The notes under the pieces are model-generated. The model did not search any database, was not told where the DNA came from, and was given only the letters and a program-made list of their open reading frames with translations. 64,000 nucleotides of DNA from sequence record OM728297.1; one strand, 5' to 3'. The translations under genes were made by a program, and so were the position numbers. Positions 4,221-25,305 of the stretch are shown piece after piece. The first letter of the stretch is position 1. Every line of letters begins with the position of its first letter.

Positions 4221-5346
4221 ACTTTTCCCCTTCAAAAACATACTCCAATAAGATTGGATATCTGTCAAAATATTTACTATTTACAAATTTAACTGATTCT
4301 GCATCTATACGATCGAATAATTGTGATTCAATATTGATTATATCTTTGTTACTAAAATTATAAAGATTATTATTTAATAGTTGCATATTCTTATATAATT
4401 CTTTTAAATTTTCCTCACCTAATTCATCTCTTAGACCATTCAATAGGTCTGTATTATTATATTCAATATTCTTTAATATATTATTATCAATACATTTTTG
4501 AATAAAATTAAGAGCCTTAATATTTCCCATTTTCTTAATACTACTGATATCATAATCTTTATATCCTGTAAGAGAAACCAATAATGAATACATATCTGGG
4601 AAAATAGAGAAATAATAATCCCTTTTACTTTTTTCTAGGAGAATATCAATAATATCTTCTGATGCTACAAATCTTGATTTTTCTTTTCCTCTAAGTTCTA
4701 ATTGAAGAATTCTGTCTTGTAAGTTTAAATCTTGATAATGAATTTTTTCATTTGAAATAATTATATTCATATCATTTTTATTAATAATATTTTGTTTAAG
4801 TCTTGAATTTTCAGATAAGAATAAATGTGGTACTAATCTTGGATCCATTTCATCCGTTTTGATAAAGTAGGCATGTGGTACATATTCACAAAATAATTTA
4901 ATAATATGAACATTCTTCTTAACCATATTATTAAATAAGCCAAAGGTCTGATTTTTATCATCTAATCTTTTTTCATAAAAAGAACTTCTATAGTTTTTAT
5001 CAATATTAGTTAATCTCGTATCTCTTTTATCTGAATAATAGAAAACAAAGTTAGTATACATTTTTAATCTTGAATAGAAGAAATGTCTATAATGTCCAAT
5101 AATATTAATAACTTCTGAAGCAATCATAAAACGTTCTCTCTGTTTTAATGAATTCATTGTTTCTAAAGTTTGTGGATTGTATAATGACTTAACTATATCC
5201 CAAAAATCAATAAAAATATTAACAGTATTATACTCTCTATCATTACCAGTTATAATCGTTTTATTATTAATATATGGTTTGACTAAAGGCATTAATGTAT
5301 CATAACTTAATTTTTTGGAATGAAGGATTTTTTCTAATAATAACAT
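4213..5346 (-). CDS. Divergent 5'-3' exonuclease/FEN (T4 RNase H-like) fold protein, catalytic acids degenerate
   Basis: Motif order NIFIDF...FVFYYSD...EMDP...IISNEKIHYQ...SLTGYKDYDISSIKKMGNIKA parallels FEN motifs and the H3TH loop. Confidence 0.55.
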   Translation of the reverse strand: MLLLEKILHSKKLSYDTLMPLVKPYINNKTIITGNDREYNTVNIFIDFWDIVKSLYNPQTLETMNSLKQRERFMIASEVINIIGHYRHFFYSRLKMYTNFVFYYSDKRDTRLTNIDKNYRSSFYEKRLDDKNQTFGLFNNMVKKNVHIIKLFCEYVPHAYFIKTDEMDPRLVPHLFLSENSRLKQNIINKNDMNIIISNEKIHYQDLNLQDRILQLELRGKEKSRFVASEDIIDILLEKSKRDYYFSIFPDMYSLLVSLTGYKDYDISSIKKMGNIKALNFIQKCIDNNILKNIEYNNTDLLNGLRDELGEENLKELYKNMQLLNNNLYNFSNKDIINIESQLFDRIDAESVKFVNSKYFDRYPILLEYVFEGEKYE

Positions 5347-16614: not shown

Positions 16615-17036
16615 AAAATAATTTTAGATATAACTTTTTTATTACTTTGCCTACCAAATATAATAGTAATTTGATCAGGATCATTAGTAGTCTGAATATC
16701 TCTTGAAACAATAAAGGTAAAAACAAGTATTTTAGATCCTCTATCATTATCTACTGTATCCAAATCAAATTGTATTCCTATATTGGTTGGTATAAATTTA
16801 CTTATTTGATTATCAACTTTTTCTTTTAATTCTTGTTTTAATTGATCATCAATAAATTCAAATTGATAATTTTCGATACCTACACCTAATTCTGGTTGAT
16901 TAGGATATGTACCTTGTTCAATTATCATTAAATTTTGAATAGTCTGTGCTAATGCTTCTAAATCTTTCCTCTCAGCATTAGTGTTATATATACTCTTTTC
17001 CAAAAGGAGTTCACTCTTAAATATATCATCAGCCAC
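16611..17036 (-). CDS. Baseplate wedge gp25/GPW-like protein
   Basis: IQNLMIIEQGTYPNQPELGVGI matches the gp25 pattern (L.T..GE....P.FG). Confidence 0.75.
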   Translation of the reverse strand: MADDIFKSELLLEKSIYNTNAERKDLEALAQTIQNLMIIEQGTYPNQPELGVGIENYQFEFIDDQLKQELKEKVDNQISKFIPTNIGIQFDLDTVDNDRGSKILVFTFIVSRDIQTTNDPDQITIIFGRQSNKKVISKIIL

Positions 17037-17071
17037 TATAGTTCTAAGACCTCCTCCATTATTTCAGGTAA

Positions 17072-17083
17072 TATTGAAATGTT
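17072..17083 (-). promoter_or_regulatory. Late promoter AACA-N6-TA
   Basis: AACA TTTCAA TA upstream of the gp25-like operon. Confidence 0.65.
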
Positions 17084-17112
17084 AACAATTCTCCAAATTA
17101 TAAAAAATAATA

Positions 17113-17124
17113 AACAATATTTTA
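17113..17124 (+). promoter_or_regulatory. Late promoter AACA-N6-TA
   Basis: AACA ATATTT TA upstream of 17159. Confidence 0.55.
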
Positions 17125-17158
17125 TAAGACATAATAATGGGAAAGACGGTGAAAAATA

Positions 17159-17875
17159 ATGAAAATAGAAAAATGTCCATTTTGTTCTAATAAGTATAAA
17201 GACAAATCTTTTCTTTGTAATCATTTAGAAAATAAACATAAAGAACAGTTGAATGGTCTTTCCCCAGCACAGGTATATTTTAATTTTAAATATAATAAAA
17301 CTGGTGGAAAATGTATTATATGTAGAAAGTCTACTAAATGGAATGAAAGTACCAATAGATATGAGAGAATTTGTGATCGTAAAGAGACTAATTGTAGAGA
17401 GAAATATAGAGAAATGTTTAAAAAACGTATGATGGGTAAGTATGGTAAGACTACTTTACTTGATGAACCAGAAATGCAAAAGAAGATGCTTGATTCTAGA
17501 AAGATATCTGGTGAATATACTTGGACAAATAAAAAAGGTAAGACTAAATATACTGGTACTTATGAAAAAGATTTTTTAGAATTTTTAGATGTATTTTTAC
17601 ATTTTGAACCAAGTGATGTTATTAGTCCTGCCCCACAAGTTTTTTACTATGAATTTAATGGTAAAAAACACTTTTATATGCCAGATTTTTATATTACATC
17701 AATTAATACCATCATAGAGATAAAAGCTTTTGATAATAAACATTATAGAGCTAGAGATATAGAACAAGAAAAAGCAAAGGATAAAGCAGTATTAAAAAGT
17801 AATTTTAATTATATTAAAATTCATGATAAAGAATATGATGAATTTTTTGATTATCTTTTAAAATTTAAAGAATAA
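17159..17875 (+). CDS. C2H2 Zn finger + PD-(D/E)xK nuclease (free-standing homing endonuclease-like)
   Basis: CPFC-x12-H-x4-H; CIIC; YMPDFYI...IIEIK. Confidence 0.7.
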   Translation: MKIEKCPFCSNKYKDKSFLCNHLENKHKEQLNGLSPAQVYFNFKYNKTGGKCIICRKSTKWNESTNRYERICDRKETNCREKYREMFKKRMMGKYGKTTLLDEPEMQKKMLDSRKISGEYTWTNKKGKTKYTGTYEKDFLEFLDVFLHFEPSDVISPAPQVFYYEFNGKKHFYMPDFYITSINTIIEIKAFDNKHYRARDIEQEKAKDKAVLKSNFNYIKIHDKEYDEFFDYLLKFKE

Positions 17876-23493: not shown

Positions 23494-24198
23494 ATGTTAG
23501 TACCAAAGATGAATAATCCAAGTCTTATAAATGAAGATGAGTCTTATGAAGTTGTAATTGATTCTATTGATGATCGTGCAGACTTTTTTAATTTTGAAAT
23601 TACTTCTAATGAGAAGGAAAGACTAAAATTTATCAAACGAATTGAAAAGATAATTAGACGTTCATTTGAATATAAAACTTATATTGGCTTTTTAAAAAAT
23701 GAACTAGATTTGACAAAATGTACTTTCCTTCCAATGGTAGATACAAAGGAAATTAAAAAAGTTGGTTTAGAATTCCATCACTACCCTTTTACTCTTTTTG
23801 ATATTGTAAGCATAGTACTAGATGAACATATTCTTGTTAATGGAGAAAAAAGAATTAATCCATTTGATATTGCTGAAGAAGTCATGGAATTACATTATCA
23901 GAATTATATAGGGTTAGTTCCACTTACAAAAACTGTTCATGAGCTAGTACACTCTGGAAAGATTTTTGTAAACCTTAACTATGTATTTGGTAACTATACA
24001 AAGTTTATTAATAAGTATGAGTCAGCTAATACTGAAAATTTCCAAGTATTATTAGGTAATTTAGAACAGCTTAGTCAGAAAGAAGATAGAGAAGGAAGTA
24101 TTAATGGTGATATCCTAGACAAGAGTCTATTAAAACTTAATATTAAAGATATTGAAAATCCTAATAAGATTGAAGTAGAAGATGAACTTCTTGCATAA
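23494..24198 (+). CDS. Divergent HNH-like (His-Me finger) protein, paralog of 35674
   Basis: C...EFHHYPFT...GLVPLTKTVHELVHSG. Confidence 0.6.
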   Translation: MLVPKMNNPSLINEDESYEVVIDSIDDRADFFNFEITSNEKERLKFIKRIEKIIRRSFEYKTYIGFLKNELDLTKCTFLPMVDTKEIKKVGLEFHHYPFTLFDIVSIVLDEHILVNGEKRINPFDIAEEVMELHYQNYIGLVPLTKTVHELVHSGKIFVNLNYVFGNYTKFINKYESANTENFQVLLGNLEQLSQKEDREGSINGDILDKSLLKLNIKDIENPNKIEVEDELLA

Positions 24199-24257
24199 AT
24201 ATTAAGTTTTAAAAAATTTATTTCTCTTTTTTATTTTAAAAATTACCCTGCATTTCA

Positions 24258-24269
24258 AACAATTTAATA
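24258..24269 (+). promoter_or_regulatory. Late promoter AACA-N6-TA driving the structured RNA
   Basis: AACA ATTTAA TA; predicted +1 at 24269, directly before the first helix. Confidence 0.65.
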
Positions 24270-24525
24270 CGTGTGAGAGTAGCATCCTTTCACGATGTTC
24301 ACACGGAAGGAGATAGTGAGAGGTCTCCTTCTTACTCAACTGTTCGCAATGTGATTTCTCCATTTAGTACTCTGTGCATACCTCTATAGGTAAACTATGG
24401 GATGATCTTTGTCATTGGTTTTTGTTTCACCTCCGCATTAGTCACTGAGAGGTTTACCGATCCTCTTGGTGACAATGTGACTGTTCTAGTTGTTAATGTT
24501 GGTGCAATTCCAACAACAGTCACCA
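24269..24525 (+). ncRNA. Candidate structured non-coding RNA ending in a tRNA-like minihelix with CCA
   Basis: ORF-free, GC-richer island; at least five helices, a possible pseudoknot, acceptor stem + T-arm + ACCA at the 3' end. Confidence 0.65.
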
Positions 24526-24754
24526 AATCTAAAATATAAAATTAGCTTTTCATTGGCGGAAAACACTTTTTTATATTTAAGAAAATATAACCATCAAACG
24601 TTTCTATTCCCTATTAATAGTTAGATGATAACGATCTTTCTATTACATCCAATCCGATACTCCTTCTAATTTTTATTGGTCTAATCAATTCTGTTCGCCA
24701 TTGATTTAACTAATAAGATTTAGAAGGGGTAAATTATTGAAAGGAATGATTTAA

Positions 24755-25114
24755 ATGAATATAGTACTTGAAGCTTTGCTTCTAAAAAAGTATGAAAAAG
24801 AAATTGATGCATTACATACACATTTAAAAGCTGAAATAGAAAGAGCTATTAATATTTATAAAAATTTAGCTATTGAAGAACTCTTAGATTATAATAAAAA
24901 TTATGAACTACAAGAAGAATTCTCTTCTCCGTTTAAAAGCAAGTGGATTAAGAGTATTGAATATCTTACACATTTAAAAAGATCTATGAATCTTGGTCAA
25001 TTTAATATTCTTAAAGCAGATTTAGATGAGTTAGATAACCATCTTTCCCATCCAAAATTAAATAGAGACAAGACTATTATTCGTTCTTTAATTGATGAAA
25101 TATTAAAATTTTAA
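24755..25114 (+). CDS. Hypothetical protein
   Basis: RBS GAAAGGA; N-terminal VLE resembles the head-protein cleavage motif. Confidence 0.65.
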   Translation: MNIVLEALLLKKYEKEIDALHTHLKAEIERAINIYKNLAIEELLDYNKNYELQEEFSSPFKSKWIKSIEYLTHLKRSMNLGQFNILKADLDELDNHLSHPKLNRDKTIIRSLIDEILKF

Positions 25115-25148
25115 TTTCATCATTTTTTATAAAAATAATCTTACATTT

Positions 25149-25160
25149 AACATATAAATA
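25149..25160 (+). promoter_or_regulatory. Late promoter for tRNA-Asn
   Basis: AACA TATAAA TA, 30 nt upstream of the tRNA. Confidence 0.6.
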
Positions 25161-25190
25161 TGGAATAAATTTTACTCTTCTAGATTTTAT

Positions 25191-25262
25191 TCCCCTTTAG
25201 CTCAATGGTAGAGCATCTCACTGTTAATGAGATGGTTGCAAGTTCGAGTCTTGCAGGGGGAG
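25191..25262 (+). tRNA. trnN: tRNA-Asn(GTT), CCA not encoded
   Basis: Cloverleaf: TCCCCTT/AGGGGGA, GCTC/GAGC, TCTCA-CTGTTAA-TGAGA, GCAAG-TTCGAGT-CTTGC, G73. Confidence 0.95.
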
Positions 25263-25305
25263 TAAAGTCTAGAAGGGTTTTTACTGCCTATTTAGGAGGT
25301 CTATA

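Follow-up and report, generated by a model that had tools for sequence, protein, structure and literature searches.

A tRNA-like acceptor/T-arm minihelix in a late transcript of a Bacillus subtilis jumbo phage, a candidate module for RNA processing

What does the top half of a tRNA, with an encoded CCA and with no D-arm or anticodon arm, do in an unannotated gap of a jumbo phage genome? The question is raised by a 47-nt element (24479–24525, + strand), referred to here as the minihelix, in the window, i.e., the whole 64-kb stretch of DNA analyzed. The window represents the final 64 kb of the record of Bacillus phage vB_BsuM-Goe21, which belongs to the AR9/PBS1 group; the 561 nt that span the element are 100% identical to Goe21 and 98.9–99.3% identical to AR9, PBS1, and Internexus. 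AR9-group phages are uracil-DNA jumbo phages that infect B. subtilis. The minihelix sits in a 556-nt gap without annotation between the homologs of AR9 g242 (23494–24198, + strand) and g243 (24755–25114, + strand), and is followed by an A+T-rich spacer (24526–24754, + strand) that may equally be described as the rest of a g243 leader. This spacer contains a long imperfect hairpin (24642–24747) that reaches the g243 ribosome-binding site. An intrinsic terminator 3′ of the CCA was sought, and none is present. Further downstream lies tRNA-Asn(GTT) (25190–25263, + strand), the sole canonical tRNA of the phage, which is served by a separate late promoter (start at 25160; AR9 208874). This tRNA gene differs in allele between Goe21/AR9 and PBS1/Internexus.

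The g243 homolog encodes a protein of 119 aa (phrog_30317) and is expressed late, with FPKM values of 1.5, 572, and 2326 at 5, 20, and 40 min. Its relatives were found in the AR9 clade alone. The structure model has a pLDDT of 50 and is unusable. A match to the Pfam coiled-coil “tRNA-binding arm” family is weak and sub-threshold (E = 0.0098; 16 bits, cut-off 27), as is typical of coiled coils. A phage gene annotated as “rbn” was considered as an RNase Z gene; it encodes an MBL-fold protein that scores equally as anti-Pycsar Apyc1 and was excluded from the evidence.

By direct reading, the minihelix has an acceptor-like stem with the 5′ strand GACTGTT (GACUGUU; 24479–24485) and the 3′ strand AACAGTC (AACAGUC; 24515–24521), a 12-nt linker (CTAGTTGTTAAT; RNA CUAGUUGUUAAU; 24486–24497) that stands in for the D-arm, anticodon arm, and variable loop, a T-arm of GUUGG-UGCAAUU-CCAAC (24498–24514; GTTGG at 24498–24502, the loop TGCAATT at 24503–24509, and CCAAC at 24510–24514), and a discriminator A (24522) with an encoded CCA (24523–24525), all on the + strand. 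Every base quoted for these parts in the preliminary description was found in place. The arrangement is that of a tRNA top half: the acceptor stem (7 bp) is stacked on the T stem (5 bp), the 7-nt loop retains U54, C56, and A58, and the discriminator is followed by CCA. Position 55 of the T-loop is G instead of U, as it also is in called phage tRNAs with the identical T-arm. The third acceptor pair is C3-G70, and neither G3-U70 nor any other recognizable minihelix identity element was found. The earlier remark that the minihelix encodes its CCA and the tRNA-Asn does not was borne out by the sequence of both, the 3′ end of the tRNA reading ...AGGGGGA-G-TAA.

The flanks of the minihelix allow a competing structure. 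Two copies each of GTGAC (24469 and 24477) and GTCAC (24441 and 24519) had been pointed out previously, together with an alternative pairing that could bury the discriminator and the first C, and all were located as claimed. We found that this pairing corresponds to a perfect 9-bp inverted repeat, GTGACTGTT/AACAGTCAC (24477–24485 and 24515–24523), the only two copies in the window, such that A24522 and C24523 can pair with U24478 and G24477. The preliminary description gave little weight to this 9-bp pairing that hides A73 and C74, to the view of the whole region as a 486-nt g243 leader, and to an inert relic, all of which are considered here. When the whole transcript is folded, a 17-bp hairpin (24435–24478) competes for U24478 and G24477 and leaves the ACCA free. 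In these transcript folds, the minihelix (7+5 bp, or 6+6 bp in the MFE structure) starts exactly at G24479 with a single-stranded ACCA, and the pair probabilities are 0.63–0.97 for the acceptor stem and 0.65–0.75 for the T stem. The features of an RNase P minihelix substrate are thus all present, i.e., a 12-bp stack with a T-loop, an ACCA, a G24479-C24521 pair (G1-C72), and U24478 at position −1, with the caveat that the bases at −1 and −2 are able to pair with positions 73 and 74.

Could such an element arise by chance? A strict Watson-Crick scan (7 bp, a 0–25-nt linker, 5 bp, a 7-nt loop, and NCCA; a pattern defined after the site had been seen) returned a single site in the window, namely, the minihelix, compared with 0.02 sites on both strands of random 64-kb windows. 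With G-U pairs allowed, this value increases to 0.42 sites per random window, and about a third of random windows contain the pattern. The 47-mer by itself is unremarkable (z = −1.95), the 257-nt RNA from the transcription start site (TSS) to the CCA has z = −3.15, and the hairpin plus minihelix (24435–24525) has z = −4.86, with none of 200 shuffles as stable. Judged from the sequence, the strongest case against chance is the 17-nt identity of the T-arm to real tRNAs, rather than the fold. By our own arithmetic, the chance of finding this 17-mer within 128 kb is approximately 1e-5 or less.

Of the 100 matches to the T-arm (GTTGGTGCAATTCCAAC) in 99 IMG/VR stretches, 25 fall within tRNAs called by ARAGORN (Met-CAT 15, Cys 3, Tyr 2, Phe 2, Asn, Ile). 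An encoded NCCA is seen in many of the tRNAs that carry this T-arm, and long-range acceptor pairing was found in 38 of 66 unique T-arm contexts. In bacterial genomes, all 22 matches to the T-arm followed by N8 and CCA are tRNAs or tRNA-like, and the identical T-arm is also found in tRNAs of the Patescibacteria group (CPR). Relaxing the stem to GGTGCAATTCC with N11 and CCA (GG-UGCAAUU-CC) retrieved mainly tRNA-Met and tmRNA genes. The 251-kb phage genome has no other such hairpin besides the T-arm of tRNA-Asn. These results support the earlier reading of a genuine tRNA-type top half, i.e., a 12-layer acceptor/T-arm stack, a loop with U54, C56, and A58, an encoded ACCA, and a T-arm that recurs exactly in phage tRNAs. 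It is thus very likely that a late transcript carries a tRNA top half here, either derived from a tRNA or mimicking one.

The evidence for transcription comes from published data. The AR9 late consensus is AACA-(6N)-TA/G (Lavysh et al., 2017; PMC5312081), and AACAATTTAATA (24258–24269, + strand; AACA-(N6)-TA, start at A24269) fits it perfectly. Table S3 of the same study lists a late TSS at AR9 207979 (+), and its 51-nt sequence corresponds to positions 24219–24269 of the window. The island is therefore transcribed late from the + strand, with the minihelix ending 257 nt downstream of this start. The existence of an upstream RNA of about 210 nt, proposed in the preliminary description, agrees with this start, which lies 210 nt upstream of the minihelix on the same strand. 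Lavysh et al. (PMC5312081) label the 24269 start “tRNA” and the start 30 nt upstream of tRNA-Asn “g244”; the step heights are 73 at 24269 and 2101 at the tRNA-Asn promoter. No separate TSS for g243 appears in Table S3, which contains primary starts only, and the abundance of g243 is about 3-fold that of g242; for these two reasons, the 24269 transcript probably runs through the minihelix into g243. No minus-strand TSS was found inside the island, and the sole nearby one (24196) is directed away from it. The minihelix may then be the 3′ module of a structured RNA of about 257 nt or a part of the g243 leader.

The approximately 210 nt between the start and the minihelix (24269–24478, + strand) form a G+C-rich structured RNA, with hairpins at 24270–24304 and 24306–24331 and with the 17-bp hairpin at 24435–24478 abutting G24479. 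The GC content is 0.40–0.41 in this stretch and about 0.25 in the surroundings. The fold z-score is −3.2 for the + strand vs. −2.1 for the − strand, and several helices contain G-U pairs that would become A-C mismatches on the − strand. The first hairpin (GCATC-CTTTCAC-GATG) shares 11 nt with two of the loci compared (L022 and L077), which is within chance for 2.1 Mb, and a reading of this hairpin as an armless tRNA-Glu was dropped.

Several identities for the region were tested and rejected. A canonical tRNA (RF00005) has no match in 24255–24560 at E ≤ 10, ARAGORN reports only the tRNA-Asn, and the minihelix has no room for D- and anticodon arms. For a tmRNA, both ARAGORN and Rfam were negative, the third pair is C3-G70, and the acceptor strands are local. 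GOLLD (RF02032) and ROOL have no match in the window at E ≤ 10. More broadly, Rfam searches of the whole window at gathering scores, and of 1.5 kb and 306 nt at E ≤ 10, returned the tRNA-Asn alone, with no match to any riboswitch, T-box, or leader family. Six-frame translation and Pfam searches of the small ORFs in the gap were empty, and a minus-strand “VGIAPTLTT” peptide is unsupported as a methyltransferase motif. An attP-type tRNA 3′ fragment was discarded, as the complementary 5′ strand is present and phages of the AR9 type are not known to integrate.

The locus differs among relatives. Many relatives of g242 exist; ten loci were fetched, with g242 proteins 56–73% identical. Five of these (L251, L252, L253, L256, and L260) have three to nine tRNA genes downstream of the g242 homolog on the same strand. 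A tRNA-Asn gene lies at or near the end of the cluster in all of the five but L256, with tRNA-Arg after it in three, and a LigT-like 2H phosphoesterase gene is often present. As AR9 has one tRNA where these relatives hold three to nine, the AR9 island is therefore best read as reduced, and consists of a late promoter, the 210-nt structured RNA, the minihelix, the spacer, g243, a second late promoter, and tRNA-Asn. In L253, a GOLLD RNA (RF02032, 227 bits) lies between the g242 homolog and the first tRNA, is preceded by the late-promoter-like AACATATAAATA, and ends 6 nt ahead of tRNA-Ser, such that processing at the 5′ end of the tRNA would define the 3′ end of the GOLLD RNA.

Similarity to the AR9 island itself was not found downstream of g242 in the ten relatives (blastn with word size 7; Smith-Waterman alignment vs. 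shuffles), and none of the tRNAs in their islands has the UGCAAUU loop, all reading GGTTCRA. Compared with all 239 loci, similarity of the island is confined to the T-arm. A blastn search of 50,697 phage records found no homolog of the 257-nt RNA outside the AR9 clade, the members of which are 98.9–100% identical over the gap. Within this clade, the 262-nt island (24269–24530) has one 4-nt indel and one substitution (A24516G in PBS1). On the + strand, this substitution gives a U-G pair and retains the helix, and on the − strand, it would give C-A; against a background of about 1–2% variable sites, it is uninformative for selection. With no diverged homolog of the AR9 RNA, covariation and selection are not demonstrable for this particular copy.

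Similar minihelices were found in other genomes. Minihelices of the same build with a short linker, counted as a lower stem of at least 6 pairs directly adjacent to the T-arm and a 5′ linker of 8–20 nt, occur in 15 of 66 non-tRNA T-arm contexts vs. 4.4% in shuffled controls. The comparison set was fetched with the AR9 T-arm or its loop, and likeness in that arm is thus partly circular, whereas the flanking stems, linkers, and positions are observations independent of the query. The clearest set (L018, L091, L101, L228, and L161) lies in the 5′ UTRs of homologous phage genes, whose products (about 104–133 aa) have diverged to 22–45% identity. Every member folds into the shape of the AR9 minihelix, and the lower stem shows compensatory changes (CGUGUU/AACGCG, CACGUU/AACGUG, and CGUGUU/AACACG). 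The minihelix follows a terminator-like hairpin by 6–8 nt in this set, and in the L018 branch (L018 and L091), its 3′ strand abuts the Shine-Dalgarno sequence and the CCA is absent. AR9 and the L018 family share 22 contiguous nt.

A further arrangement, shared by L140, L112, and L182, consists of a hairpin, GUAU, a 6-bp stem, a 10-nt linker, the T-arm, and ACCA, and additional instances were found in L090, L041, L098, and L027. Members that end in NCCA are L140 (ACCA), L161 (ACCA), and L228 (GCCA). The set of UGCAAUU-loop minihelix leaders was assembled in this work and is not a curated family; its build is a GG-UGCAAUU-CC hairpin with an adjacent lower stem of 6–8 pairs (0–1 nt on the 3′ side) and a 5′ linker of 9–12 nt, and the AR9 minihelix has this build. 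The linker motif is CUAGUU in AR9 and UUAGUG in L161, and most others have AAAGU or AAAGC. The AR9 minihelix also has the upstream hairpin (24435–24478), but the g243 start codon is 229 nt away, compared with 7–36 nt in the others. In six Bacillaceae chromosomes, we found an element of 60–73 nt that combines this T-arm and an NCCA with a middle part that varies, located 28–36 nt upstream of an alpha/beta-type SASP gene and with two compensatory pairs in its 7-bp acceptor stem. No Rfam family matched these recurrent minihelices, and literature searches on phage minihelices and on tRNA-like leaders of SASP genes yielded no specific report. The AR9 minihelix would thus belong to a recurrent set in Bacilli phages and Bacillaceae that appears to be undescribed.

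Acceptor/T minihelices are substrates of bacterial RNase P, as in the model substrates of the pAT1 type. The explanation that we consider best, at a probability of roughly 0.4, is that the minihelix is a tRNA-derived module for processing and end protection that is read by RNase P, with the cleavage being a prediction. The host RNase P would recognize the 12-layer acceptor/T-arm stack with the ACCA and cut between U24478 and G24479. The upstream 210-nt RNA would thereby end in the 17-bp hairpin with a protected 3′ end, and the downstream g243 leader or mRNA would gain a flush, base-paired 5′ end that should resist the 5′-to-3′ decay of B. subtilis. Additional 3′ trimming could free a 47-nt species ending in CCA. 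We favor this processing module because the hairpin, the U|G junction, and the 12-layer stack with ACCA are what bacterial RNase P requires, and because the layout parallels both the GOLLD-tRNA junction of L253 and the hairpin-minihelix-RBS order in Bacilli phages. For the RNase P-cleaved tag of the preliminary description, this support is circumstantial. Against it, the 9-bp stem (U24478 and G24477 with A24522 and C24523) would impede RNase P and hide the CCA, the 229 nt to the g243 start codon exceed the approximately 35 nt of comparable leaders, and the linker of AR9 reads UAGU, whereas AAGU is more common. A generalization, which we regard as tentative and somewhat unlikely as a whole, is that UGCAAUU-loop top halves with a 12-layer acceptor/T stack, a short linker resembling a D-loop, and often NCCA form an undescribed class of modules put into transcripts of Bacilli phages and Bacillaceae, as ahead of the SASP genes; these would recruit tRNA-processing enzymes, chiefly RNase P, for cleavage of leader or polycistronic RNAs and leave decay-resistant paired 5′ ends, and in jumbo phages would also set the 3′ end of a neighboring structured ncRNA.

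The processing module has to be weighed against an inert relic, i.e., a tRNA gene of the UGCAAUU-loop class that lost its D-stem, anticodon arm, and variable loop by deletion as the AR9/PBS1 island shrank, and that is transcribed only by virtue of lying in the g243 leader. The shrinkage from three to nine tRNAs to one and the high variability of the island among relatives, tRNA-Asn allele included, agree with this scenario; one internal deletion trivially spares the acceptor and T arms, and a conservation signal is unobtainable for this copy. The relic is less likely in our judgment than the processing module, but it is a serious alternative and the closest one. The GGTTCRA loops of all tRNAs in the relatives' islands imply that it is not a decayed copy of those, all 12 of its pairs are perfect, and the neighboring 210 nt are G+C-rich and significantly structured, which is unexpected for junk in a genome of 27% GC. 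Moreover, the architecture with a 9–12-nt linker recurs far above shuffles in unrelated phages, with compensatory changes upstream of a diverged gene family. A purely accidental origin, as a chance hairpin or as part of a small gene (a 45-aa ORF at 24402–24539 on the + strand or a 43-aa ORF at 24395–24526 on the − strand), fares far worse. Such ORFs do span the minihelix, and the z-score of the 47-mer and the G-U-tolerant scan are compatible with chance; the exact 17-nt identity to a widespread tRNA T-arm argues strongly against coincidence. The ORFs have no Pfam match and no convincing Shine-Dalgarno sequence, and their 40% GC compares with about 25–29% in phage genes. The PBS1 substitution is non-synonymous in both (codons examined by hand) and keeps the RNA pair, and the − strand ORF further suffers from the absence of a minus-strand TSS within the island. 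We therefore consider this origin highly improbable.

Two other readings accept the structure as functional and assign it a different role. In the first, the 486-nt 5′ UTR is an uncut cis-regulatory leader that binds a protein or RNA and controls the translation or stability of g243. The position of the minihelix between the only mapped promoter and g243, the hairpin at 24642–24747 that reaches the ribosome-binding site, the comparable minihelices in other 5′ UTRs, and the “tRNA-binding arm” match of g243 all point in this direction. That match is below threshold, the g243 model is unusable, no riboswitch, T-box, or leader family was matched, and 229 nt separate the minihelix from the start codon; we consider an uncut leader improbable. 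Slightly less probable still is a stand-alone mini-tRNA mimic, one of the two possibilities raised in the preliminary description, in which a 47-nt CCA-ending RNA acts in trans, either as a decoy or competitor (for the CCA-adding enzyme, a synthetase, EF-Tu, a T-box, or a tRNA-targeting defense nuclease) or after aminoacylation. The CCA-adding enzyme and some synthetases are able to act on minihelices, and the full top-half geometry with ACCA and the NCCA ends of other members are as such a mimic would need. On the other side, no 3′ processing signal or terminator was found beyond the CCA, the C3-G70 pair comes with no recognizable identity element, and the TSS is of modest strength (73 vs. 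2101 at the tRNA-Asn promoter). The best-conserved L018 family lacks the CCA and runs straight into the Shine-Dalgarno sequence, which suggests a role in cis.

The proposed processing module has precedents. A stacked 7-bp acceptor and 5-bp T stem with a T-loop and a 3′ RCCA suffices for recognition by bacterial RNase P, and the precursor of the P1/P7 C4 antisense RNA is a natural phage case, in which the 5′ end of an RNA other than a tRNA is defined by a mimic of this kind. The AR9 minihelix resembles both the model substrates and the C4 precursor in its stack, T-loop, and RCCA. It differs in that cleavage is predicted, positions −1 and −2 can pair with A73 and C74, the RNase P of Bacillus is of type B, and the loop is UGCAAUU. 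The AR9 layout also fits that of MALAT1/mascRNA, MEN-beta, and the t-elements of plant mitochondria, where a tRNA-like module lies beside a functional RNA and tRNA enzymes make the ends, a logic already invoked in the preliminary description. Those systems, however, are eukaryotic or organellar, and mascRNA, which lacks an encoded CCA, mimics a full cloverleaf and is released by RNase P and RNase Z, whereas the CCA is encoded in AR9. An encoded CCA blocks RNase Z in B. subtilis. The borrowing of RNase P or RNase Z by tRNA-like modules to shape other RNAs is familiar from eukaryotic nuclei and organelles, and only isolated cases are known in bacteria and phages. Processing tags of a tRNA-like kind are as such already known (mascRNA, t-elements, and the P1 C4 precursor), and it is the minihelix form, the variant T-loop, the setting in a late RNA of a jumbo phage, and the look-alikes that appear to be undescribed.

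Other tRNA-like or island RNAs share some of these features. The 3′ tRNA-like structures of plant RNA viruses (“genomic tags”) are, as in AR9, CCA-ending tRNA mimics on a viral RNA, but they occupy the 3′ ends of viral genomes, usually form pseudoknots, and become aminoacylated, whereas the AR9 element is internal in a transcript of a DNA phage and shows no sign of charging. GOLLD and ROOL are large structured phage ncRNAs found beside tRNA islands (bioRxiv 10.1101/2024.12.08.627333). The AR9 RNA is likewise structured and lies in a tRNA island, with GOLLD at the syntenic position in L253; however, it is only about 257 nt long, matches neither family, and has no sequence similarity to the L253 RNA. 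If the minihelix is processed, it would provide a simple and portable device for making and stabilizing RNA ends in Bacillus and its phages, and a clue to how island RNAs such as GOLLD, ROOL, and the 210-nt RNA acquire their ends. If it is only a relic, it still records the decay of a tRNA island in a jumbo phage. Since AR9, PBS1, and B. subtilis 168 are in established laboratory use, the idea is directly testable.

The tRNA-like domain of tmRNA is built along similar lines: it combines an acceptor stem with a T-arm and ACCA, its D-loop lacks a D-stem, and it too is without an anticodon arm, with GG-UGCAAUU-CC in many of the tmRNAs found. This domain and the minihelix differ in that the acceptor strands of tmRNA are the ends of a 260–400-nt RNA with an mRNA-like body before the T-arm, a G3-U70 pair, a tag frame, and pseudoknots, whereas the AR9 strands are 29 nt apart. 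The linker of the minihelix reads CU-AGUUGUUA-AU; among tRNAs with the UGCAAUU T-loop, the D-loops are sequences such as AGUAGUA or, in a phage tRNA-Cys that shares the T-arm, AGUAGUUA, and these are without the usual GG. From this comparison, the linker is possibly a remnant of a D-loop that has lost its stem, a state also seen in the tRNA-like domain of tmRNA.

Among the loci fetched for comparison from phages, prophages and bacterial chromosomes, tRNA-like elements were found upstream of genes for alpha/beta-type small acid-soluble spore proteins (SASPs) in six Bacillaceae chromosomes, namely two of Rossellomorea and one each of B. coahuilensis, Niallia, Schinkia and Metabacillus. These elements are located at L232:1599-1671 (+), L233:6798-6864 (-), L225:6135-6202 (-), L227:4825-4888 (-), L231:1722-1781 (-), and L234:1165-1235 (+), and in each case the SASP gene starts 28-36 nt downstream. 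The UGCAAUU T-arm is exact and NCCA is present; the acceptor stem has 7 bp, with two compensatory pairs among the six chromosomes, and the middle region varies from 19 to 36 nt. None of the six elements was called by any tool used or matched an Rfam family, and our literature search on them found no paper.

A minihelix with the same T-loop as the phage element is also conserved at five loci of Bacilli phages and prophages, where it lies within the 5' UTR of homologous genes (~104-133 aa): L018:7355-7405 (+), L091:3658-3708 (+), L101:554-604 (+), L228:722-772 (-), and L161:2652-2702 (-). The encoded proteins share 22-45% identity and have no PHROG match. In this set, a terminator-like hairpin lies immediately 5' of the minihelix and the lower stem has compensatory changes; in the L018 branch (L018 and L091), the Shine-Dalgarno sequence directly continues the minihelix.

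In the phage, a long imperfect hairpin (24642-24747; 48-nt arms, 73% complementary) is located immediately upstream of the g243 ribosome-binding site and extends into it. Its near-match to mir-576 was dismissed as meaningless. The g243 product (24755-25114; 119 aa) is all-helical in a low-confidence structure model. It matches a "tRNA-binding arm" family of coiled coils in Pfam below the threshold (E = 0.0098), which is probably an artefact of coiled-coil sequence. A further match to the late-promoter consensus, AACACTTTTTTA (24562-24573), is located between the element and g243; no TSS has been reported at this site.

In an AR9-like relative, a GOLLD RNA (RF02032, 227 bits; L253:5325-5769) occupies the position of the AR9 island (region L253:4926-5776), with the late-promoter-like AACATATAAATA upstream and a tRNA-Ser that begins 6 nt past the GOLLD end. 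In four other relatives, a LigT-like 2H phosphoesterase of the 2'-5' RNA ligase family is encoded within the tRNA island or next to it (L251:5098-5649, L252:5520-6071, L254:5221-5784, and L256 from 9751); this gene is absent from the AR9/Goe21 locus. Of these, the L252 contig has 51% GC, compared with 27% in Goe21; its g242 homologue is 67% identical. It also has several T-arm-like hairpins (at 4932, 5129, and 5295), which ARAGORN did not call as tRNAs; the one at 5129 was called by the Rfam tRNA model.

The tRNA-Asn(GTT) gene of Goe21/AR9 is quite unlike the PBS1/Internexus copy (region 25164-25263, with L003:3470-3640), and PBS1/Internexus have an additional ~60-nt insertion upstream. Because the gene sequences differ so widely yet the flanks are ~99% identical, this tRNA has been exchanged as a cassette. 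An inverted repeat, CTCTTCTAGA...TCTAGAAGGG, is found on both sides of the gene. The AR9 GenBank record has no tRNA feature in the island/tRNA-Asn region; Lavysh et al. (2017; PMC5312081; Table S3) give the label "tRNA" to the late TSS at the island start (sequence 24219-24269) and the label "g244" to the strong TSS (sequence 25110-25160) that precedes the real tRNA-Asn by 30 nt. Within the island, Goe21 lacks four nucleotides (TCTT) at 24395/24396 that are present in AR9, PBS1, and Internexus; this gap is in a weakly structured part, just upstream of a small ORF at 24402.

Outside the window, the Goe21 gene annotated as "ribonuclease BN" (16815-17537 of the record; L247) encodes a metallo-beta-lactamase-fold protein. 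In Pfam, it scores 49.3 bits for Anti-Pycsar Apyc1 (cut-off 50), the same as for Lactamase_B_2. Instead of a tRNA 3' nuclease, the protein may be a phosphodiesterase with an anti-defence role.
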